A stretch of DNA of 63,464 bases, the filler included, from Cercozoa sp. M6MM (lineage: Eukaryota > Protista > Endomyxa: Ascetosporea): assembly GCA_040357565.1 (NCBI GenBank). It is 8 parts of 8 records of this genome, joined end to end, with 100 filler letters (N's around TTAATTAATTAA, not from the genome) between each part and the next. Parts side by side here need not be neighbours in the genome. Positions count along the whole stretch, not along the records: positions 28,938 to 55,950 come from JBDODJ010000143.1; 7 more parts are not named here. One strand, 5' to 3'. Shown piece by piece: positions 32,791-50,800 of the stretch. The position numbers were made by a program, and so were the translations under genes. The notes beneath the pieces are model-generated. The model did no database searches and had not been told where the DNA came from. It worked only from the letters and a program-made list of their open reading frames with translations. How positions within the stretch are numbered: the stretch's first letter is position 1; each line of letters starts with the position of its first letter.

Positions 32791-35700
32791 TCAACAGTAG
32801 CGACGCAGCACACGCACCATGTCGACGACGATAACATTGCCTGTCCATCCATGTTCCAGTCACCGCAACATAGGACTGCAGAGGGACAGGGACACAGGCT
32901 ACCGGACGAGGAGGCAGTGACGATATGCGTCAGGTGTGGCAGCGCACGCAGAAGCGCAACGAGCGACTCGGCTTTCACCAGCCGCTCGACGCCTGGGGGT
33001 AAGGGTAGGGTAAAGGGAAGGGGGTAAGGAATAAAAGGGGAGGGCATAAGGGCAGGGAGGGGAGGGGGTAAGATTGCTACCCCTCTCCCGGACACGCACG
33101 GCGAACATGGCCGACGAAGTCGGTGACGAGCGGAAGTTTGGGTCAACCAGAGTGCTGCCTCGTGCCACCGAGATCACCAGTGAGCCGGGCTCGGTGCCAC
33201 TCACGCGCACCACGAAGGGACAGCCTGCAGTTATACCCCCTCTGTACTCCCCCTCTTCACCCCCTCCCAGTGGACCGGTACCGTAGTGCAGCCGCGTCTG
33301 CGTGAGCCAGTGCGCGGCGCGGTGTCTGGTGACGCAGCCGGCGATAAGAGCGGCGCCGGCGCCATCGCTCGTGGTGCCACTCAGCAAGGCGCCGCACCGG
33401 TGCAGGGCCTGGGAGTAAGATGGGGTATGGGGAAAGAGGGGCAAGAGGGGTGAAGAGGAGGGTAAGAATGCTCACCTGCAGAGTGGGCCCAATGAAGGCG
33501 TCGTAGGCCTGCCGCAATGTGTCCGCACTTATGTCTTTCAAGTGCTATGGGGGGGGGGTAGAAACCAAAGGGCCGGGGGGGGGGGAGGGTAAAAGGGGAT
33601 AAGAGGCGTATACCGGCTGCCAGAACTCGCGGTGGCAGGCAGTGACACTGCGTCCGACGCGTCGCATGAGGTCGTCAATAGCGCCTTGCACCGACTCCGG
33701 TGTCACTTCGCCTGGACATCGGGGTAAAGGGGTCAGGAGATAACGGGGGGGGGGGGGGTAAACCCACCAGCAATGAGGCGCGCGAAATCATCAAAGTGCC
33801 GCGGCCACCTGGGTCCCTGTGTCACCATACAATGTACACATATGTATGTATACATAATATATTATATGTGTATATATACAGAGGCACCTCCTCGCTGTTG
33901 CTGTTGGCAGAAGCATTTGACTCTGACGGCAGGCGAGTCTTCTGACAAGGGGAAGGGCATAATGCAGACATACGCATATACACGTACACACACATCTATA
34001 TCTACATAAATACACTATATACATGTGTAGACATATATATATATATATATATACATCGGTATATAACTATGTGTAGGAAGAGGGTACAGGAAGCAAGTCG
34101 CCCAGCACGGTGCGCAACAACGGGTCGCCACTTTGCTCGATCGCATCGAACTTGTGCTGGCCTACACAGACAGGGGGGAGGGGGGGTAAAGAAGCGAAAG
34201 GGGGAGGGGTAAAGGTGGGTGAAGGGGTAGAGTACGAAGCAGACGAGCAGCGCGCAGCAGCAGCGCCGGACGACCGCCGAGCTTTTGCAAAGTTCTCTGC
34301 GGGGGAGGGGTAAAGAGGGAGGGTAAAGAGGGGGCAAGGAATGCACCGAGAAAGCAATGGTCGTGAGAACGTCGCCATCGCCGCCACTAGGCGCGTGCGG
34401 CAGCTCGTCGAGCGACAGCGTGCGCGGCGCCTGTGGAACCAAGCATACATACATATCAACCAACCATACAAACCAGTGAATCCAGACACATGCTTGTCCA
34501 GTAGTGGAAAAGGCAGGAGGAAAAGGCAGGCCTCAAAACAAAAAGACGCCAAAAAGAGTGTGCCTCGGCGTCGGACACCGTCGCACGTTACCACCGAGTG
34601 GTCATGGCAACGACAGCTTCCTTAATACCGGGGGAGTGCGTTTGACGGCACATGCCTCTCGCTTTTAGAGGGGCCTTGGCGATGCACACAGTCATCAAGA
34701 GAAACAGGTGATCGTGACAAGCCCAAGCTTATCGACAAGAATCACACTGGTTTTGAGGATCAAAATCAACTCCAAGGTCTCGGCAACAAAAAATCACGTC
34801 ATGGGCCAGCACAAATTGAGCAGCTTATTTCAAGCGTAAAGAGCACTTATGCGCACCCCAGTGCATCCTCAACACTAAAGGTCTGGGGGAGGAAGCAAAG
34901 ACAAGATTACGCATTTGATGAAGAGTCGTGCCGCCTCCCTGGGTGGCAAGCGCGGCACTGTGACGGCAAACACGGCCTCCTCGCCTGTTTGAATCCAGCA
35001 TATACACACGGGTATAGTATGCGTATTCGAAAAGAAGGGCACCAGTCGAGGCTACACATTGCTCGGTGAGCGGCGCAGTCAGCAGCACGCGCCAGTACGG
35101 CACGCGGCGCAGCAGTTCCGACACAAAGCTCCAGACGTCCTCGCTCCTGTTCAAGAACAGAGCTGCCTCGACAGGGAGGAAGGGAGCAAGGGAGCAAGGA
35201 AGGAAGGGAGGAAGGGAGGAAGGAAGGAAGGGAGGCCTGACAGAGTGAGTACAAGTCGTGGGCGTGAGGCAGGTCCAGCACCAGCCAGACGCGCTGCGCT
35301 CTGACGTCGTCGAAGAAGTCGCTGCTCGTTCTCGGTGCAGCTACGATACCCCAAGAATTGAGGGTCAGTCAGGATGGAGGGTCAGGAGGGAGGGTCAGGA
35401 GGGAAGGTGCGTACCGTGACCGCGCGTGGCAGCGGCGCGGTGCATCTCGGCCTGCACGAGGCGCGTCAGCGAGCTGAGCCGCTGCTTGAGCTGCTGCGCG
35501 TGCGCGGCCACGTTGACCACGTAGAGGCCTGTATATGCACATGTATATAGATCTACATAGGCATATATATAAATATAAATGTATATACGTATAAATCAGC
35601 ATGTCTAGACACAGAATGTATCTATATAATAAAATTATATAGATATATAGCTATAGAGAGCATGTCTAGACACAGAATGTATCTATATAATAAAAATTAT

Positions 35701-37435
35701 AGATATATAGCTATAGAGACCTAGACATTTATTTATTAATAAATGTATATCCGGTACCATCCAGACGCTCCCGTTGCAGAGCATAGTGCGCCACAGCAGT
35801 CGCGAGCGCCGATTTTCCGACGCCGCGCACGCCCATCAAGGCCACACAGCTGCACACCACCGTGTTCTCGTTTCCTCCTCTCCCCTATACAGGAGAACGA
35901 TACCGGTGTTGCCGCATGGCTACAAATACTCTCTGCGTGTCGACCTGCCTGCCTCTGCAGGGGTACAGTGAGCGTAGGTTAGGGTAGGTTAGGGTAGGTT
36001 AGGGTAGGGTAGGGTAGGGTAGGGCAGGGTAGGGTAGGGCAGGGTAGNNNNNNNNNNAGGGTAGGGTAGGGTAGGGTAGGGCAGGGTAGGGTAGGGCAGG
36101 GTAGAGTAGGGTAGGCATGGGGTACACAAAGTGTTCCGGCAGCGGCGGCAGCTGCGAGAGCGGCGGCGGCGGCGACAGGTCCTGCCACCGCGAGTCCACC
36201 GGCAAGTCGGCGAACACGGCATTGTCATGCGCTGCGTGCTTGGGCAGCAACAGGAATTTGTTCTTCTCGCGCGCCACGGCATCGCGATCGCTCGCAGCTA
36301 TTAAGGAAGGGGATCAAGGGAAGGTAGAGAGTAGGGGGGGTACCCACAGCAGCGACGGCAATGTCAAAGGAGGCACGTACAGAGTGACCAACCAACAAGG
36401 CCAGGTAGAACTGCGTAGCAAACCTCTGCACAAGGGGGTGTAGTGTATAAAAAGAGAGAAAATGCACACATGGACCAAAGACTACCCTAGCAGCGACATC
36501 ACTAACTCGCTGATCGCGTCTCACTGCGACGACATGTGGCACGCCTGCCGACACCAGTGCCTGCGCAGCAGCCTCCGAGTGGCACGACGACACAAAGGCG
36601 AACTGCAGGCCACCGCCGCCTTGTGCCGCTCCTGCACGGAGGGGTAAGATGGGGAGGAGGTAAGATGTAAGAGGGGACAACAGTACCTGCAGCAAGAAGT
36701 TGAGCCAACGTGCGCGTATGCAGCGCGTGCAACCTGCCGTCGTCGTCCTCGAGAGCCAAGGCACCGCTTCCCTGGACATGGGTGTATGCATATGGATACC
36801 AAGGGCAGCGAGGAATTCAACTCACCTGCAGACCGTGTCCACTGTAGTGGAGTGCACGACAACCCAGTGTCATCAGCGTGCGCAACTGCCGACTCGTGCC
36901 AACAGCGGCATGCATCGTCTGTGTATGCGTATACCCACATGAGACCAGCACGAGACCAACAGAGGTGCGGGTAGATAGAAGGACCCACCACAGCGCGGTT
37001 GGAAGCAGCCAGAATCTCGTGCAGCTGTGCGAGTTCGGCGGCGACATCTATGCGCGGCACTGGCTCTACCTTGCCGCTGGCCTTCATGTGCACCTGCAAA
37101 GAGCACACTAGTCCTCGCACCTCAATGTGCCTCCATCAGACAGCACAAGCACGGCTCTACCAGCGGTGCTGCCACCACATAGGCCAGATGGAACGCGTGC
37201 GTCACTGTAGATTGTGTCGACAACTGGGCTCGCAGCTCCGGTACACTGCGTGCCAATAGAGGAAATACAGACCACCCAACCCCACATTCTAAGAAGGATC
37301 ACCCATGGTCGGCATAAATCTCGTCTTCCCCGGGATTCAATGGTGGCAGGTCATCCATTACAGTAGTAGCACACACGTGCACAGCACTACATTTTCAAAT
37401 CGCCTGCCATCACGATTTTTCCGAATCTCGTCCAT
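32791..37435 (-). CDS. CHAT (caspase-like) protease - STAND/NB-ARC-like NTPase - STAT-type SH2 fusion protein; about 20 exons; start codon uncertain
   Basis: CHAT: GCRALHYSGHG (about 36836), LALED, AFVSSCHSE (about 36583), FATQFYLAL. NTPase: FVGRQ, GVRGVGKSALA (about 35820), VWLVLD, RVLLT, LPPREAARLF, LGGRPALL. SH2: LIAGCVTR..AAHWL, FVVRVSGTEPGSLVISV (about 33200), SLVALLRALPHLTHI. Confidence 0.8.
34535..34785 (-). ncRNA. Candidate structured RNA of unknown family inside the 480-nt intron 34431-34910
   Basis: Several stems that need G-U pairs on the minus strand, followed by T5 runs; no known snRNA/snoRNA/SRP/RNase P motif recognised. Confidence 0.3.
35598..35718. repeat. Intronic tandem duplication of about 60 bp (agcatgtctagacacagaatgtatc...)
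   Basis: Two near-identical adjacent copies. Confidence 0.85.
35975..36116. repeat. Intronic (TAGGG/CAGGG)n pentamer array
   Basis: Directly visible; contains a 10-N gap. Confidence 0.9.
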
Positions 37436-37536: not shown

Positions 37537-39873
37537 ATGAGTAGTGGACAAAACGGTAATATCCTGGCTAGACGCAAAACGAGTTTTTCTGTGATGTGGG
37601 ACATGTTCTGTGCCGGGCTGGTCGTTCTGGTTGGCCCGGAGCCTGACCCGCGCTGGCCGAGTGTTCTCTGTGTATCTGCGCTCGAATGGCAGCCTGTTTC
37701 ACAAAAGAAACCCAGCCATTCCGATTTTGTTTTTCTGGTCACCGCAGACCGATCATTTTTTTGCTGGCGCCGTTACGCGTGTGTTTGTTGTGCCCGCAGG
37801 AGGTGGAGCACGTGCAACGCAGTACGTGCCCCCGCATTTGCGTAACCGTGCCGGAGGGTAGACTCAAACTTCGCAGTGTGGTCTGTAGACTTTGTATCCT
37901 AATGTGCATAGACAAGAACCACAGCAGCAGTCGGGTGGGGGTCGCTTCGCGCGCGACGACGTGCGCAGTGGCGGCCGCGACTTCGGTCGCGGCTCGGACC
38001 GCCGTGACTTTGGCGGACGCCGCGATTACGGACGCGACTATGGCCGACGCGAGGGTGGCCGTGGCTACGGCGGTGGCCGCGACTTTGGACGCGGCGGTGG
38101 CGGTCGTGGCTACGGCGGTCGCGGAGGCCGCGGTCGCACTCACCCAGAGCTGTCTCCCGAGGCGGACGAGCGCTACGAGCGCGAGCTGTTCGGCGACGCC
38201 AGTCAGGCGCAGACGCAGGGAATTGACTTCTCGCGCTACGACGACATCCCGGTCGAGCTGTCCGAGGAGTTCCCGGAGCTCGACGACTTTGCCAACATGG
38301 ATCTGAGCGACTCGCTGGCCAATGCCATCAAGCTGTGCGGCTACACGAAGCCGACGCCGGTGCAGAAGTACTCGGTCCCGGTCGGTACGCAGGGCCGCGA
38401 CATCATGGCCTGTGCCCAGACCGGTTCGGTAGGCTTGCTGTACTCTGGGGACTTTGTCGTGTGTATATGTATGTGCATGTGAGCAGGGTAAGACGGCCGG
38501 TTTCCTGCTGCCGGTGATTGAGCGCATGTGCCGCATGAAGAAGGCCGGCGAGATCCGTCCGGCGGCGTCGTACCAGCGCGGCTCGCGCGAGACCTACTCG
38601 CCGACGGTATGGCTACTGCTTGTCTCTCGCCTGGTGTCTATGTGTGTCCATGTTTTGTGTGTGTATGTCAACAGGCCCTGGTGGTGGCGCCGGTGCGTGA
38701 GCTCGGCCAGCAGATCGTGCAGCATGCGCGACGACTGCTGTACCGCTCGCAGATGCGCGCTGTGTGGTATGTTCCCTGTCTATGCACGGACCGTGTGGGT
38801 GTGGGTGGGTGTGGGTGTGGCCTGTGTATGAGAGTGTGTGTAGCATCACGGGCGGTGAGGACTTTGGCGCGCAGATGCGTCGTCTGAGCTCGGTGGGCGC
38901 CGAGCTGATCGTGTGCACGCCGGGCCGCCTGAAGGACATGATCACGCGCGGCAAGATGGTGATGGACAACGTGCAGTTCCTGGTGCTCGACGAGGCCGAC
39001 CGCATGCTGGACATGGGCTTCGAGCAGGACATTCGCTTCATTGTGGAGGACACCAGCATGCGTCCCACGGAGGAGGGTCGTCAGACGATGCTGTTCTCGG
39101 CGACCTTCCCGGACGAGATCCAGCACCTGGCGCAGGACTTTTTGGCGCCGGACTACGTCTTCCTGACGGTGGGCCGCGTCGGCAGCACGATCGACCTGAT
39201 CGACCAGAAGCTCGAGTACGCCGAGGAGAACCAGAAGATGGACGTGCTGCTCGAGAAGCTCAGCGAGTGCGAGGGTCTCACGCTCATCTTCGTGCAGACG
39301 AAGCGCGCCGCCGACGAGATCGAGTACTACCTGTGCGAGTGCGGTGTCAACGCGCAGAGCATCCACGGCGACCGCACGCAGAGCGAGCGCGAGCGCGCGC
39401 TGGCGGCCTTCCGTTCCAAGAAGTGCCCGGTGCTCGTGGCCACCGACGTGGCTGCTCGCGGTCTCGACATCCCCGACGTCAAGTTCGTGATCAATTACGA
39501 CCTGCCGCAGAACATTGACACGTACACGCATCGCATCGGTCGTACCGGTCGCTGCGGCCACCACGGCACGGCCATCTCGTTCGTCAACGACCGCGACCGC
39601 GCGCTGCTGTCGGACCTGATGGGCAAGCTCGAGGAGTGCGAGCAGGAGGTGCCCGACTGGTTCGAGGCGCTCGTGCGCGACTCTGGCCGCCGTCGCCGCG
39701 GCGGTGGCGGCGGTCGTGGTCGCCGCAACTACGGTAGCGCTCTCTCTCTCTCTCTCTCTCCCCCCTACACACAACACGCGTATATGAGCTGTATGTCTGG
39801 GTGCAGGTGGCCGCGATGTGCGTCGCGATAACAACCGCGGCGGTGGCGGTGGCGGCTGGGGCAACGGGTATAT

Positions 39874-47033: not shown

Positions 47034-47749
47034 TTAGCGCGCGTGCAGAGCGTAGTGCGGCGCCGACTGGAAACTCAGGGCGGGACTAAAGCCTCCAGCG
47101 GCAGGCGGCACTCCCTGCGCTGTGGCTGCAGTACACACAAACACATAGACAGGACAGTCAAATGCAGTTTAGTTGAGACAGTCCAATCCGGTCCGGTCCA
47201 GTCCAGTCCAGTCCGGTCAGCACAGATCAAGAGTCAGTACGCACCGTTGGAAGGAACGAAGCGCGGTCGTGGCGGTCGCTTGCGCGGTCGCAGCACGCGG
47301 AAGGAGCGCTGCCTCGGCGGTGTCGGTACCGACGGTGCCGGTACATGCTGTACCGACTGCTGTACAGAGTGAACAGACTGTGCAGACTGTTGGACAGGCC
47401 GCACAGCCGTCTGTACAGGCTGTTGGACAGGCTGTTGGACAGGCTGTACAGAAGGGACCGACGGTTGGGCAGGTCGGAAGAAGTCGTCGAACGAGGCCTT
47501 GCGCTGCCTGGTCGGCTGAGTCGGTTGCTGAGCTGCCTGGACTGCCTGGACTGCCTGTGTGGGTTGCAGGGGTGCCTGTGTGGGTTGCAGGGGTGCCTGT
47601 GTGGGTTGCGGGAGTGCCTGTGCTTGTTGCGGAAAGGCAGATGGCGTCGACGAGAAGAGCGAGTCGAAGGACATGGCAGCAGCACCCGTCGCTTGTTGTT
47701 TTTCTTCAGTTTGTTGTTGCAGTTGTTGTTGTTGTTGTTGCAGTTGCAG

Positions 47750-47796
<47 letters not shown>

Positions 47797-47806
47797 NNNN
47801 NNNNNN

Positions 47807-47852
<46 letters not shown>

Positions 47853-50800
47853 GCAGTTGTTGTTGTTGTTGCAGTTGTTGTTGTTGTTGCAGTTGTTGTT
47901 GCTGCTGCTGTTGCGTTTCTTCAGCGACCAGTTGCACCGAAGTTTCGATCTCTGCACAGGGTCGGAAGGGGGTAAAGGGTGTGTTGTGTGGGGGGTAAAC
48001 AGAGCAGCGCCACCCTGACACCTGGCCAGCACGTGGCGCAGCAACGCCGAGTCGACGTCGCTCTGACTGACCCAGAGAGCCAGACGGTGCGCCACGTGCC
48101 TCGCCTCACTGCCGCACCCACTGTCGCGCAGACCGCTCGAACCGTCCAGCAGCTGCGACGCCACCTCCAGGCAGGCCTCTTGCACTACCGGGGGGGGGGG
48201 CCCCGCGGGGGGCCGGGGGAGGGGTAAAGTGTACCAGCTGACAGATACTCGGGCAGACACAGCGAAACGCATGCAACGAACAGCGCCAGTTGCGACTGTT
48301 TTCGCGCCGCTCGCATCGCTCGCTGCAATGCACTCTGCGCAGGGGAGTAGGGTAAGATGGAGTAAGAGGGGTGGGGGGTAAACAGGGGGGGTAAACAGAA
48401 GAGTAGAGCACCACGGGCGAGTGACCGAGCACGTGCGAGAGCAGAGCGGCCGCCACGGCGCGCCACACGTCGCCGCTTTCGGCGAACACTTGCGCGCACA
48501 CAGCGGCCAAATCTACGGAGGGGGGTAAAGGGTAAGTAGAGGATAAGTAGAGGCAAGAAGGAAGTAAAGAGAGGGGGGGGTTAAAGTACGAGGAGCCCTG
48601 GCGACAACGCGCATCGTGAGCACCCAGGCTTCGTCGGTCCACTCAGAGACGGTATCGTCGGTATCATCAATATCATCACTGACATCACCGTCACTCAGCA
48701 CACGCAACCACATGCGACCCAGCGGTGCCAGCACCTTCATCTCACTGCCGGGGGGTGTAAGTGGGGGTAAGAGGGGTACGGGGGGGGGGGGGGTAGTACC
48801 GAACAGCACGTGCAACAGCGGTGGTGTCACTGATGGTGGTACCAGCGACGGTGACACGTGTGACACTGTCACCACCGACACCGTCACTGGCACGTGCCAG
48901 CAGACAGAGATCACTCACGCAGAGTGCGTGCCACGGCAGTGACCGACCGATCGCCTCGGCACGCGCCGCCGCGAATTCGCCGCGCTGCAGCAGTTTCGCC
49001 ACGGCGGCCTCCTCGCTATCCGCGCGGACCTCCGCCACTGTGTCCAATGTGTCCACCAATGTGTCCGCGCGGACGTCCGCGCTGACGCAGCGCGACAAGA
49101 AACGCGCCGCCGCCGACGCGACATTCAAAACGGCGCCATCGCGTTCGAAAACGGCGCGCGCGAATTCCGCGAGCGTCGGCGCTGCTTCCGCCACGCCTGG
49201 CTCGTTCAACTGCTCGCATCAGGGGGGGGGGCCTAAAGGGTTTAATGGGTAAAGGTTATGATGGGGGGTAGGAGGTTAATGTGTAAAGGGTATGGTGAGG
49301 TAGGGGTAAGGGGTAAAATACGCGGAACGAATCGCCGCTCGGCACGGCGTAGGTACCGCCTGGGGGGGGGGGGGGGGGTAAATGGGGGTAAGGGGTAAGG
49401 GACTCAGATACCGACAGCAAAGCCCGCGCGAGACTCGGGCGAGAAAACTCCGATTTCGCTCGAGAGGGGCGGTATTTCGTCCTTGTGTTCTGGGGGGGGG
49501 GGGGGGTAAAATAACAGGGGAACAGGGGGGTAAAGGAGAGAGAAACGCGTACGAGAGACCGGCGAAACAAACGGCGATCCTGTTGTTTCAGTACCTGCGC
49601 GCGGGGGGGGGGGGGGTAAAGGGGGCAAGGGAGAGGAAGGTAAAGAGTCGTCCCCCACCGCCAACAGGAGCGAAAAAGGCGTCGAGAGAGTCGTGCTGCT
49701 GTTGCCGCACCGACTCAACCCGTTCAACCGGCGGTCCAGCAGGACTCACTGTCGGCTCAGGCAGGAAGGGTACCGACTCAGTCGGCTCGGATGCAAAGAA
49801 GTCCAATCCGACCTTCCGGCGCTCCAGCAGCGGCGACGTCACGCACACCGCCGCACTCGGCCCGAACGGTTCCGCCTCGTGCTCGACGTTCCTGTCCGCG
49901 CGGAAGCTCTCTCTGCAGGAAGGTGACCACAGTGACCACAGCCACCCTTTGCAGATACACACAAAGTACCTGGCCGTGCTGAGACTGCTCTGCCGTTGAC
50001 GAGTTGAGTTTGCTGCCGCCCCGGGCGAAAACATGGCGTCGAATTCCGCGCGCTGCTGCAACAAAGCAAATGCCACGCGAAAATCAACACAAAATCACCG
50101 CGAGCTGCCACAAAGTGTTTTTACCGTTTCTGCGTCGGTGGCACAAGCTGCAGCTGCAGCGGCGGCATCGTCGAACGGCGACTCACTGTCGGCGCCCACG
50201 GCCGCAACAAAAGAGAAATCACCGCCACTCGAAGTGAGTGCTGCGAAGGAATCCACAAACGCGTCGTTTCCGGCCACTGCATCTCCCCCGAAAGCTTCGA
50301 CCTTCGCAAAAGCGTCGTCTTTCGCAAAAGCTTCATCTTTCGCAAAAGCTTCGTCTTTTGTCAACGCTTCGTCTTGCGCGACGGCGGTGCTTGGTGCTTG
50401 GACACTTTGCGGCACTGCTTCGACCGTTTCGGTCGTTTTTTCGACTCGCTGCGGCGCAAGCGCGCCGATTTCGGCGGCGTCGTTTTCGCGAATTTCGGAA
50501 TCAGCGCTGAGATCGGCGCCAAAGTCGTCGCCAAAATTGATCTCGGTCAGCTTGGCGCCGAAATCGCGCTGTTCCGACGTCGTTTCGGTCGCAGCAGCTT
50601 CTGTTTCCTTGGCCGCAGCAGTTTCAGTTTCGATCTCAACTGAAGCTTCCGAAGCTGCTTGCGTCTCGTGCGTGCGCTGCTTGCTTTCGCTAGTGTAGGA
50701 GTCGAGATTGAACTCGGCCTCGAGCGCGCCGAAATCGGCGTCGAGCTCGGCGCCAAAGTCGGCCAGAAGCGCTTCCGTCGTGGGCGAGACATCCTGCGGC

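Follow-up and report, generated by a model that had tools for sequence, protein, structure and literature searches.

Both innate immunity and programmed cell death are commonly built on STAND/NLR switches, in organisms ranging from bacteria to animals, and in nearly all cases the sensor of such a switch is an array of repeats to which the ligand binds directly. Proteins combining CHAT and STAND domains, and the variability of STAND sensors, are already known. Equally, nSTAND1 and related conflict systems have been described (PMC8195603). In this study, we have investigated a gene of the amoeba Cercozoa sp. M6MM (assembly GCA_040357565.1), which is located on the minus strand at positions 32791-37358 of a window of 63,464 nucleotides, this window being the whole stretch of DNA analysed, joined from eight parts of the genome, with positions 28938-55950 originating from JBDODJ010000143.1. 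The predicted protein, termed P0001 in our comparisons, contains an N-terminal CHAT (caspase-like) protease, a central STAND NTPase and a C-terminal, diverged STAT-type SH2 domain. Proteins of its clade are deposited in databases, where they are uncharacterised.

The relationship of P0001 to the closest described systems is reflected in each of its three parts. With Apaf-1, CED-4 and the NLRs it has in common the tripartite order, a P-loop nucleotide-binding oligomerisation domain with Walker A and B motifs and a helical bundle with a GxP motif, and an activation logic based on induced proximity is expected for both. In contrast, its effector is a fused CHAT protease instead of a CARD, PYD, TIR or coiled-coil adaptor, its C-terminus is a single SH2 module where NLRs and Apaf-1 contain LRR or WD40 repeats, and its NTPase, unlike theirs, is nearest to the Pfam families nSTAND1 and NACHT, at marginal scores. 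With no LRR match to Pfam, the protein falls outside a strict definition of NLRs as NACHT/NB-ARC plus LRR, and the term 'NLR-like' applies to its layout only. The protease finds its best structural and sequence match in SAVED-CHAT (8TL0), which was solved as an activated filament and thus provides a precedent for the activation of CHAT domains by oligomerisation, although this type III CRISPR/CBASS-like protein contains neither a STAND NTPase nor an SH2 domain and senses cyclic oligonucleotides by its SAVED domain. The core is homologous (30-43% identity, E between 1e-71 and 1e-40) to bacterial CHAT-STAND-TPR proteins, such as the Anaerolineae protein P0012 with the order EAD7-CHAT-NACHT-TPR, and to eukaryotic CHAT-NACHT-TPR/LRR proteins, relatives that share the catalytic dyad and the NTPase motifs of P0001. 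In the subclade to which P0001 belongs, a STAT linker and SH2 domain replace the TPR/LRR sensor region of these proteins. As in STATs, linker and SH2 are contiguous in this subclade and the basic residue at alphaA2, the arginine at betaB5 and the serine at betaB7 are kept, whereas the absence of a Pfam coiled-coil or DNA-binding match and of a conserved tail tyrosine places P0001 outside the definition of a STAT transcription factor. We favour, with moderate confidence, an explanation in which a CHAT effector and a STAND oligomerisation switch are combined with a C-terminal linker-SH2 module in the position of the TPR/LRR sensor.

Gene model, protease and NTPase

Strain M6MM is an amphizoic marine amoeba of the Apofilosa (Rhizaria) with a draft genome of 23.7 Mb and 52.8% GC, which was annotated by funannotate train/predict/update with transcriptome reads (PMC11069148). 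The amoeba has meanwhile received the name Lemnamoeba sinaloensis, and the abundance of simple-sequence repeats in its genome was pointed out (PMC13746701). The part at positions 28938-55950 has a GC content of about 53-55% and contains many simple repeats. We have defined exons on the minus strand from GT-AG boundaries and reading phase, with two 3' splice choices adopted from the public protein P0001. The resulting model contains 25 exons separated by 24 introns (46-480 nt, median 67 nt), each with GT-AG ends, and it encodes a single open frame of 748 residues without internal stop, extending from the ATG at 37358 to the TGA at 32793-32791. Its translation is 100% identical to P0001 (748 residues), which is the NCBI entry MES1911438.1, 'hypothetical protein MHM6MM_003865 [Cercozoa sp. 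M6MM]'. The same protein was recovered independently in a search of the exon 22-intron-exon 23 stretch against 1.8 billion representative proteins, where the query is 100% identical once 19 intron-encoded residues are skipped. A 19-nt intron considered at the junction of exons 9 and 10 was dropped for a 54-nt intron that agrees with P0001.

The identity to the public protein bears out a previous interpretation of the DNA, here referred to as the sequence-only reading, in its proposal of a single phase-consistent frame obtained by splicing. This reading had also recognised the richness in introns, although its count of about 20 was too low, and it had placed the gene at 32791-37435, where the lower boundary coincides with the stop codon while the upper boundary turns out to be the ATG of an upstream open reading frame. 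As read from the sequence, this frame of 25 codons (37358-37435, minus strand) ends in a TAA that overlaps the main ATG in the sequence TAATG, an arrangement that would fit control by termination and reinitiation or might be due to chance. At the level of sequence, CHAT-STAND-SH2 is confirmed as one real intron-rich gene, and it is not a chance pattern, because the best of 76 homologues with a CHAT-NTPase core (29-44% identity) reach E=1.6e-71 and are collinear across CHAT and NTPase. An artefact, in which prediction had merged two neighbouring genes, one for CHAT-NTPase and one for SH2, or in which the contig was a contaminant, might be suspected from the labelling of the public record as a metagenome-assembled genome (MAG) and from the flagging of at most a few percent of the genes of the assembly as contaminants. 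We consider it very improbable, since the introns at the junctions, with lengths of only 56-146 nt, leave no room for a gene boundary, the same collinear fusion is found in independent genomes and in a EukProt model, the public annotation drew on transcript data and both the GC content and the repeat-rich introns agree with the published description of the genome.

A second public isoform (P0003, 781 residues) retains introns 22 and 23. Intron 22 (33225-33281, 57 nt) is in frame and free of stops, and its retention inserts 19 residues between helix alphaA and strand betaB of the SH2 domain, whereas the retention of intron 23 (32993-33080) replaces the C-terminal half of the domain. If real, such isoforms would be without a functional SH2.

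The CHAT protease is encoded by exons 2-8 (36245-37199, minus strand) and extends approximately from residue 35 to 235. Its putative catalytic dyad is contained in the motifs LHYSGHG (residues 105-111, with the codon of His110 at 36837-36835) and FVSSCHS (residues 154-160, with the codon of Cys158 at 36584-36582). In a comparison of 69 homologues, Cys158 never varies, and at least 90% of them keep His110. PF12770 (CHAT) is listed for P0001 in the precomputed Pfam annotation, whereas it was not among the matches of P0001 in the hmmscan run carried out here; homologues score between 25 and 53 bits against this family (cutoff 24). Features obtained with ESM for a piece covering exons 6 and 7 show a similarity of 0.93-0.94 to CHAT clusters. 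The top Foldseek match of the model of P0001 is the SAVED-CHAT filament 8TL0 (E=2e-7), and the same protein is found with the family profile among structures of the PDB (6e-14). AlphaFold assigned a predicted local distance difference test score (pLDDT) above 90 to residues 32-520, which comprise CHAT and the STAND module. By modelled fold and dyad, the N-terminal domain is a CHAT cysteine protease with predicted activity.

The STAND NTPase follows at approximately residues 272-520 (exons 8-17, 34094-36136, minus strand) and was recognised with Pfam, Foldseek and the family profile. Its first motif, FVGR (residues 274-277, 36130-35948), is interrupted by intron 8 (35955-36125), which consists of simple repeats of the CCCTA/CCCTG type and contains an assembly gap of N at 36048-36057. 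The last letters of exon 8, GT, and the first of exon 9, A, form a split codon that provides the valine of the motif with the phase kept, and relatives align through '...EHFVGRQVD...' at this junction with zero residues missing. Since the flanking exons are in phase and the relatives are gapless at this position, the coding frame is unaffected by the gap and no coding sequence is lost. The motif is followed by the Walker A sequence GVRGVGKS (residues 298-305, 35833-35810, with Lys304 at 35815-35813), the Walker B sequence VWLVLD (residues 378-383, with Asp383 at 35275-35273), RVLLT (residues 409-413, 35091-35077), EAARLF (residues 441-446) and the GxP sequence GGRPALL (residues 484-490, 34278-34258). 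Within the SH2 clade, Lys304 and Arg277 are invariant, the acidic residue of Walker B is an aspartate, replaced by glutamate in one relative, and Gly485 and Pro487 are kept in every relative that spans the GxP region.

In Pfam, nSTAND1 passes on P0001 by a narrow margin (27.2 bits versus a cutoff of 27.1), AAA_16 (2.5e-6), NB-ARC and NACHT all stay under their cutoffs, and the relatives pass NACHT at 36-48 bits. Foldseek detects resemblance of the NTPase to Apaf-1, CED-4 and the resistosomes of ZAR1, Sr35 and NRC (E=2e-6 to 4e-5), and the family profile matches AfsR (1.5e-16), NLRP1 (3.5e-11) and also NLRP3/5, Sr35 and ZAR1 in the PDB. Matches of P0001 in a phmmer search of the PDB to a LysW-hydrolase (E=8e-4, residues 434-493) and to ribosomal S3 were taken as chance. 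The combination of CHAT and a STAND NTPase proposed in the sequence-only reading is thus in agreement with Pfam, ESM, Foldseek and the family profile, and all motifs listed there, from the dyad to the arginine of the SH2 domain, are found in the given order.

The SH2 subclade and the C-terminus of P0001

The accessory domains attached to the CHAT-NTPase core vary in the family and include a C-terminal TPR region, LRR, an N-terminal FHA domain, a kinase, SAM and a C-terminal SH2. The order CHAT-NTPase-SH2 is found in 13 proteins, all of them inside one subclade of 19 members in the tree of the CHAT-NTPase core (SH-aLRT 82), whose other members are mostly short and probably truncated models or carry the module without a label (P0005). 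This subclade is confined to eukaryotes, with Rhizaria and oomycetes, including Phytophthora, among its members, and some of the Phytophthora proteins bear the automatic UniRef name 'SH2 domain-containing protein'. In nine relatives, the Pfam SH2 family scores above its cutoff (21.4-40.7 bits) at a C-terminal position behind CHAT and NACHT, in P0006 the Pfam family STAT_linker matches at 6.7e-5, and a hidden Markov model (HMM) of the clade detects the linker-SH2 module in the further members P0005 and P0081. Compared to the PDB, the profile of the subclade finds STATa of Dictyostelium (1UUR, 5e-16), followed by STAT5, 6, 3, 1 and 2 (1e-14 to 4e-11), in each case over the contiguous linker and SH2. 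The designation as STAT-type SH2 is well supported for the clade because its profile matches solved STATs over both elements. As the sequence-only reading had proposed, the SH2 resides in the sensor slot, collinear with the position of TPR and LRR in sister clades.

Phospho-signalling modules are also found elsewhere in the family. An N-terminal FHA domain, which binds phosphothreonine, precedes the core in P0028 from Gefionella okellyi and P0070 from Achlya hypogyna, both without a C-terminal SH2, and in P0049 the same core is followed by a C-terminal protein kinase, so that the coupling of the CHAT-NTPase cassette to modules of this kind seems to be recurrent. The match to P0002 (23% identity in 10 stretches) was set aside, as it resembles a match of repeat or low-complexity sequence.

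In P0001, a low-complexity spacer (residues 523-556) leads to a stretch of helices that is left over from a STAT-type linker (residues 557-632), as defined by alignment, both being encoded by exons 18-22 (33349-34087, minus strand). The diverged STAT-type SH2 encompasses residues 633-726 (exons 22-24, 32922-33348, minus strand) and contains the motifs LIAGCVTRHRAAHWL (residues 633-647), FVVRVS (residues 658-663) and SLVALLRALPHLTHI (residues 712-726). The pocket is kept in 13 of the 13 proteins of the clade with an arginine or lysine at the alphaA2 position 640, an arginine at the betaB5 position 661 and a serine at the betaB7 position 663, which in P0001 correspond to Arg640 (33327-33325), Arg661 (33207-33205) and Ser663 (33201-33199). 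Also retained in P0001 are Gly636, Leu647, Pro657 and Phe658. A clade HMM built without P0001 matches residues 632-720 at the collinear position (E=2.4e-6 for a single target), with a score of 16.6 bits compared to 5.7 for the best of 2000 shuffles. Among the positions of the linker, Trp587, Ser595 and Phe606 survive, and positions 1-91 of the clade HMM stay unmatched. With exon pieces as query, Pfam returned only a P-loop match and SH2 at E=0.15, and the SH2 piece found just non-significant matches to the SH2 of SHP2 in a phmmer search of the PDB (E=1.7). As judged by these alignments, the homology of the C-terminus to the bona fide SH2 domains of the relatives is real, and this SH2 is the most diverged copy of its clade.

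Several observations weigh against the assignment of a sensory SH2 in P0001. The score of the Pfam family SH2 (PF00017), at residues 636-687, is 15.5 bits with a cutoff of 21 (E=0.019), and on the clade HMM it amounts to 13-17 bits compared to 80-296 for other members. Relatives have about 45 residues in the STAT linker that P0001 lacks, and the protein is located on a long branch (1.39) in the tree of the core domains. The SH2 has a pLDDT of 35-60 in two AlphaFold runs, the second of which included SH2-bearing relatives only and did not improve the C-terminus. Homologue searches limited to a region returned either the query itself or one extra protein, a search of the ESM Atlas with residues 590-748 gave no usable match, and the SH2 taken alone retrieved nothing from the large databases. 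Finally, a winged-helix domain, for which no dedicated test was run, was not recognised behind the helix bundle with the GxP motif, where the AlphaFold model continues with nothing but short helices at 502-518, followed by a disordered spacer. Of the STAT-type linker-SH2 proposed in the sequence-only reading, the homology, the pocket residues and the match of the clade profile hold, whereas the Pfam score of the protein itself remains below the cutoff, part of the linker is missing and the pLDDT is low. Similarly, the check by AlphaFold and Foldseek envisaged there was successful for CHAT and NTPase, with high confidence and structural matches, but provided only an SH2-like order of elements for the SH2.

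These observations could be accounted for if the architecture were real but the SH2 of P0001 were a decaying relic, with the protein regulated by other means or in the course of losing its function, and with phosphopeptide sensing restricted to better-conserved relatives. In line with decay are the score on the clade HMM, with 13 bits the lowest of any member, the deletion in the linker, the replacement of the conserved glutamate following Ser663 by glycine and of the conserved aromatic residue at 674 by valine, the long branch of the core domains and the low confidence of the models. Conversely, the frame is open across four short exons with correct phases, Arg640, Arg661, Ser663, Pro657, Phe658 and Leu647 are retained, and both AlphaFold models predict the order alpha-beta-beta-beta...alpha, with a helix, three strands, two strands and a helix at a pLDDT of 35-60, a confidence that is also low for the helices of the linker. 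We regard a relic as rather unlikely.

Proposed mechanism and its implications

In our favoured reading, with SH2 as the sensor of a STAND-controlled CHAT protease, a mechanism can be proposed by analogy to Apaf-1/NLRs and SAVED-CHAT. The SH2 module would bind a phosphorylated peptide, probably containing phosphotyrosine, and this binding would lift autoinhibition. The NTPase would then oligomerise, and the clustering of the CHAT domains would switch on their cleavage of substrates in cell death or defence signalling. Because of the strong divergence of its SH2, the sensing step is less certain in P0001 than in its relatives. An alternative use of the module by STAT-style reciprocal dimerisation via a phosphotyrosine in the tail was rejected as unlikely, since no conserved tyrosine was found C-terminal to the SH2 in the alignment of the clade.

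SAR lineages are not known to possess classical tyrosine kinases. In Dictyostelium, STAT-SH2 signalling is run by tyrosine kinase-like (TKL) kinases, so that the absence of classical ones does not decide the matter. For the clade as a whole, found in Rhizaria and oomycetes, we tentatively propose that the STAT-type linker-SH2 might serve as ligand sensor, where phosphotyrosine made by the cell itself or by a pathogen would directly trigger NTP-dependent oligomerisation and the CHAT death protease, a scenario that is possible but which we would not consider as probable. Instead of sensing the activating ligand, the SH2 could act in recruitment, as an adaptor docking to a phosphorylated partner or scaffold, possibly via phosphoserine or phosphothreonine as in SH2 domains of the Spt6 type, with activation by another input. 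Phospho-binding and signalling modules elsewhere in the family, including the N-terminal FHA domains of Gefionella and Achlya and a C-terminal kinase and SAM, are in accordance with docking, as their varied positions would suggest a modular coupling to phospho-signalling and no fixed sensor slot, and so would be a lack of classical tyrosine kinases in SAR lineages. However, the SH2 is found at the exact position of the TPR/LRR sensors of sister clades, its pocket resembles that of STATs in having residues of the kind that bind phosphotyrosine, and the example of TKL kinases in Dictyostelium again applies, which makes a mere adaptor improbable in our view.

If the SH2 indeed occupies the sensor slot, it would tie a STAND switch to a reversible phosphorylation mark and thus endow it with a different input logic. 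The presence of crop pathogens of the genus Phytophthora in the clade, where phosphotyrosine signalling is barely explored, would offer a testable entry point. A sensor role would further imply that the STAT linker-SH2 cassette has circulated as a mobile module outside of transcription factors and in lineages without classical tyrosine kinases. This bears on the origin of the linker-SH2, whose nearest solved match is STATa of Dictyostelium and which is here attached to a protease-NTPase and not to a DNA-binding core. The gene of P0001 itself is of more modest value; no other member of the clade has diverged as far, and another may be the better choice for study. Among approximately 8.4 million full texts, none was found that contains both 'CHAT domain' and 'SH2 domain', and a description of the CHAT-STAND-SH2 architecture was likewise not found in any paper, with subscription literature outside the scope of these searches. 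The sequence-only reading, which was aware of no characterised protein of this kind, is to this extent upheld, but the architecture is not unique, as it defines a conserved clade that is already contained in databases.

Introns and surroundings of the locus

The introns of the gene are strongly C/T-rich on the coding strand and often contain units of the CCCTA/CCTTACCC type. A CTTAC-like motif shortly 5' of the AG at their 3' ends is a possible branch point. Some introns harbour AT/ATAC microsatellites, and intron 10 contains a tandem duplication of 61 nt (35598-35719). The composition of introns from repeats fits the load of simple repeats reported for the genome of M6MM. By far the longest is intron 14 (34431-34910, 480 nt), which splits the helical domain of the NTPase and contains several short open frames, with nothing recognisable in its sequence.

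Nothing suggests a defence island around the gene. In the part at positions 28938-55950, tblastn found no second copy of the CHAT-STAND family and no tRNA was found. The sole recognisable neighbour is a DEAD-box RNA helicase on the plus strand (37892-39831), which is oriented divergently, with about 530 bp between the start codons of both genes. It is DDX3/Ded1-like, with an RGG-rich N-terminus, Pfam matches to DEAD (2.7e-22) and Helicase_C (5e-34) and at least one intron. At a larger distance, a long array of some 67 TTG/CAA trinucleotides (47711-47913) is broken by a second assembly gap (47797-47806) and adjoined by several short tandem repeats (47179-47622).

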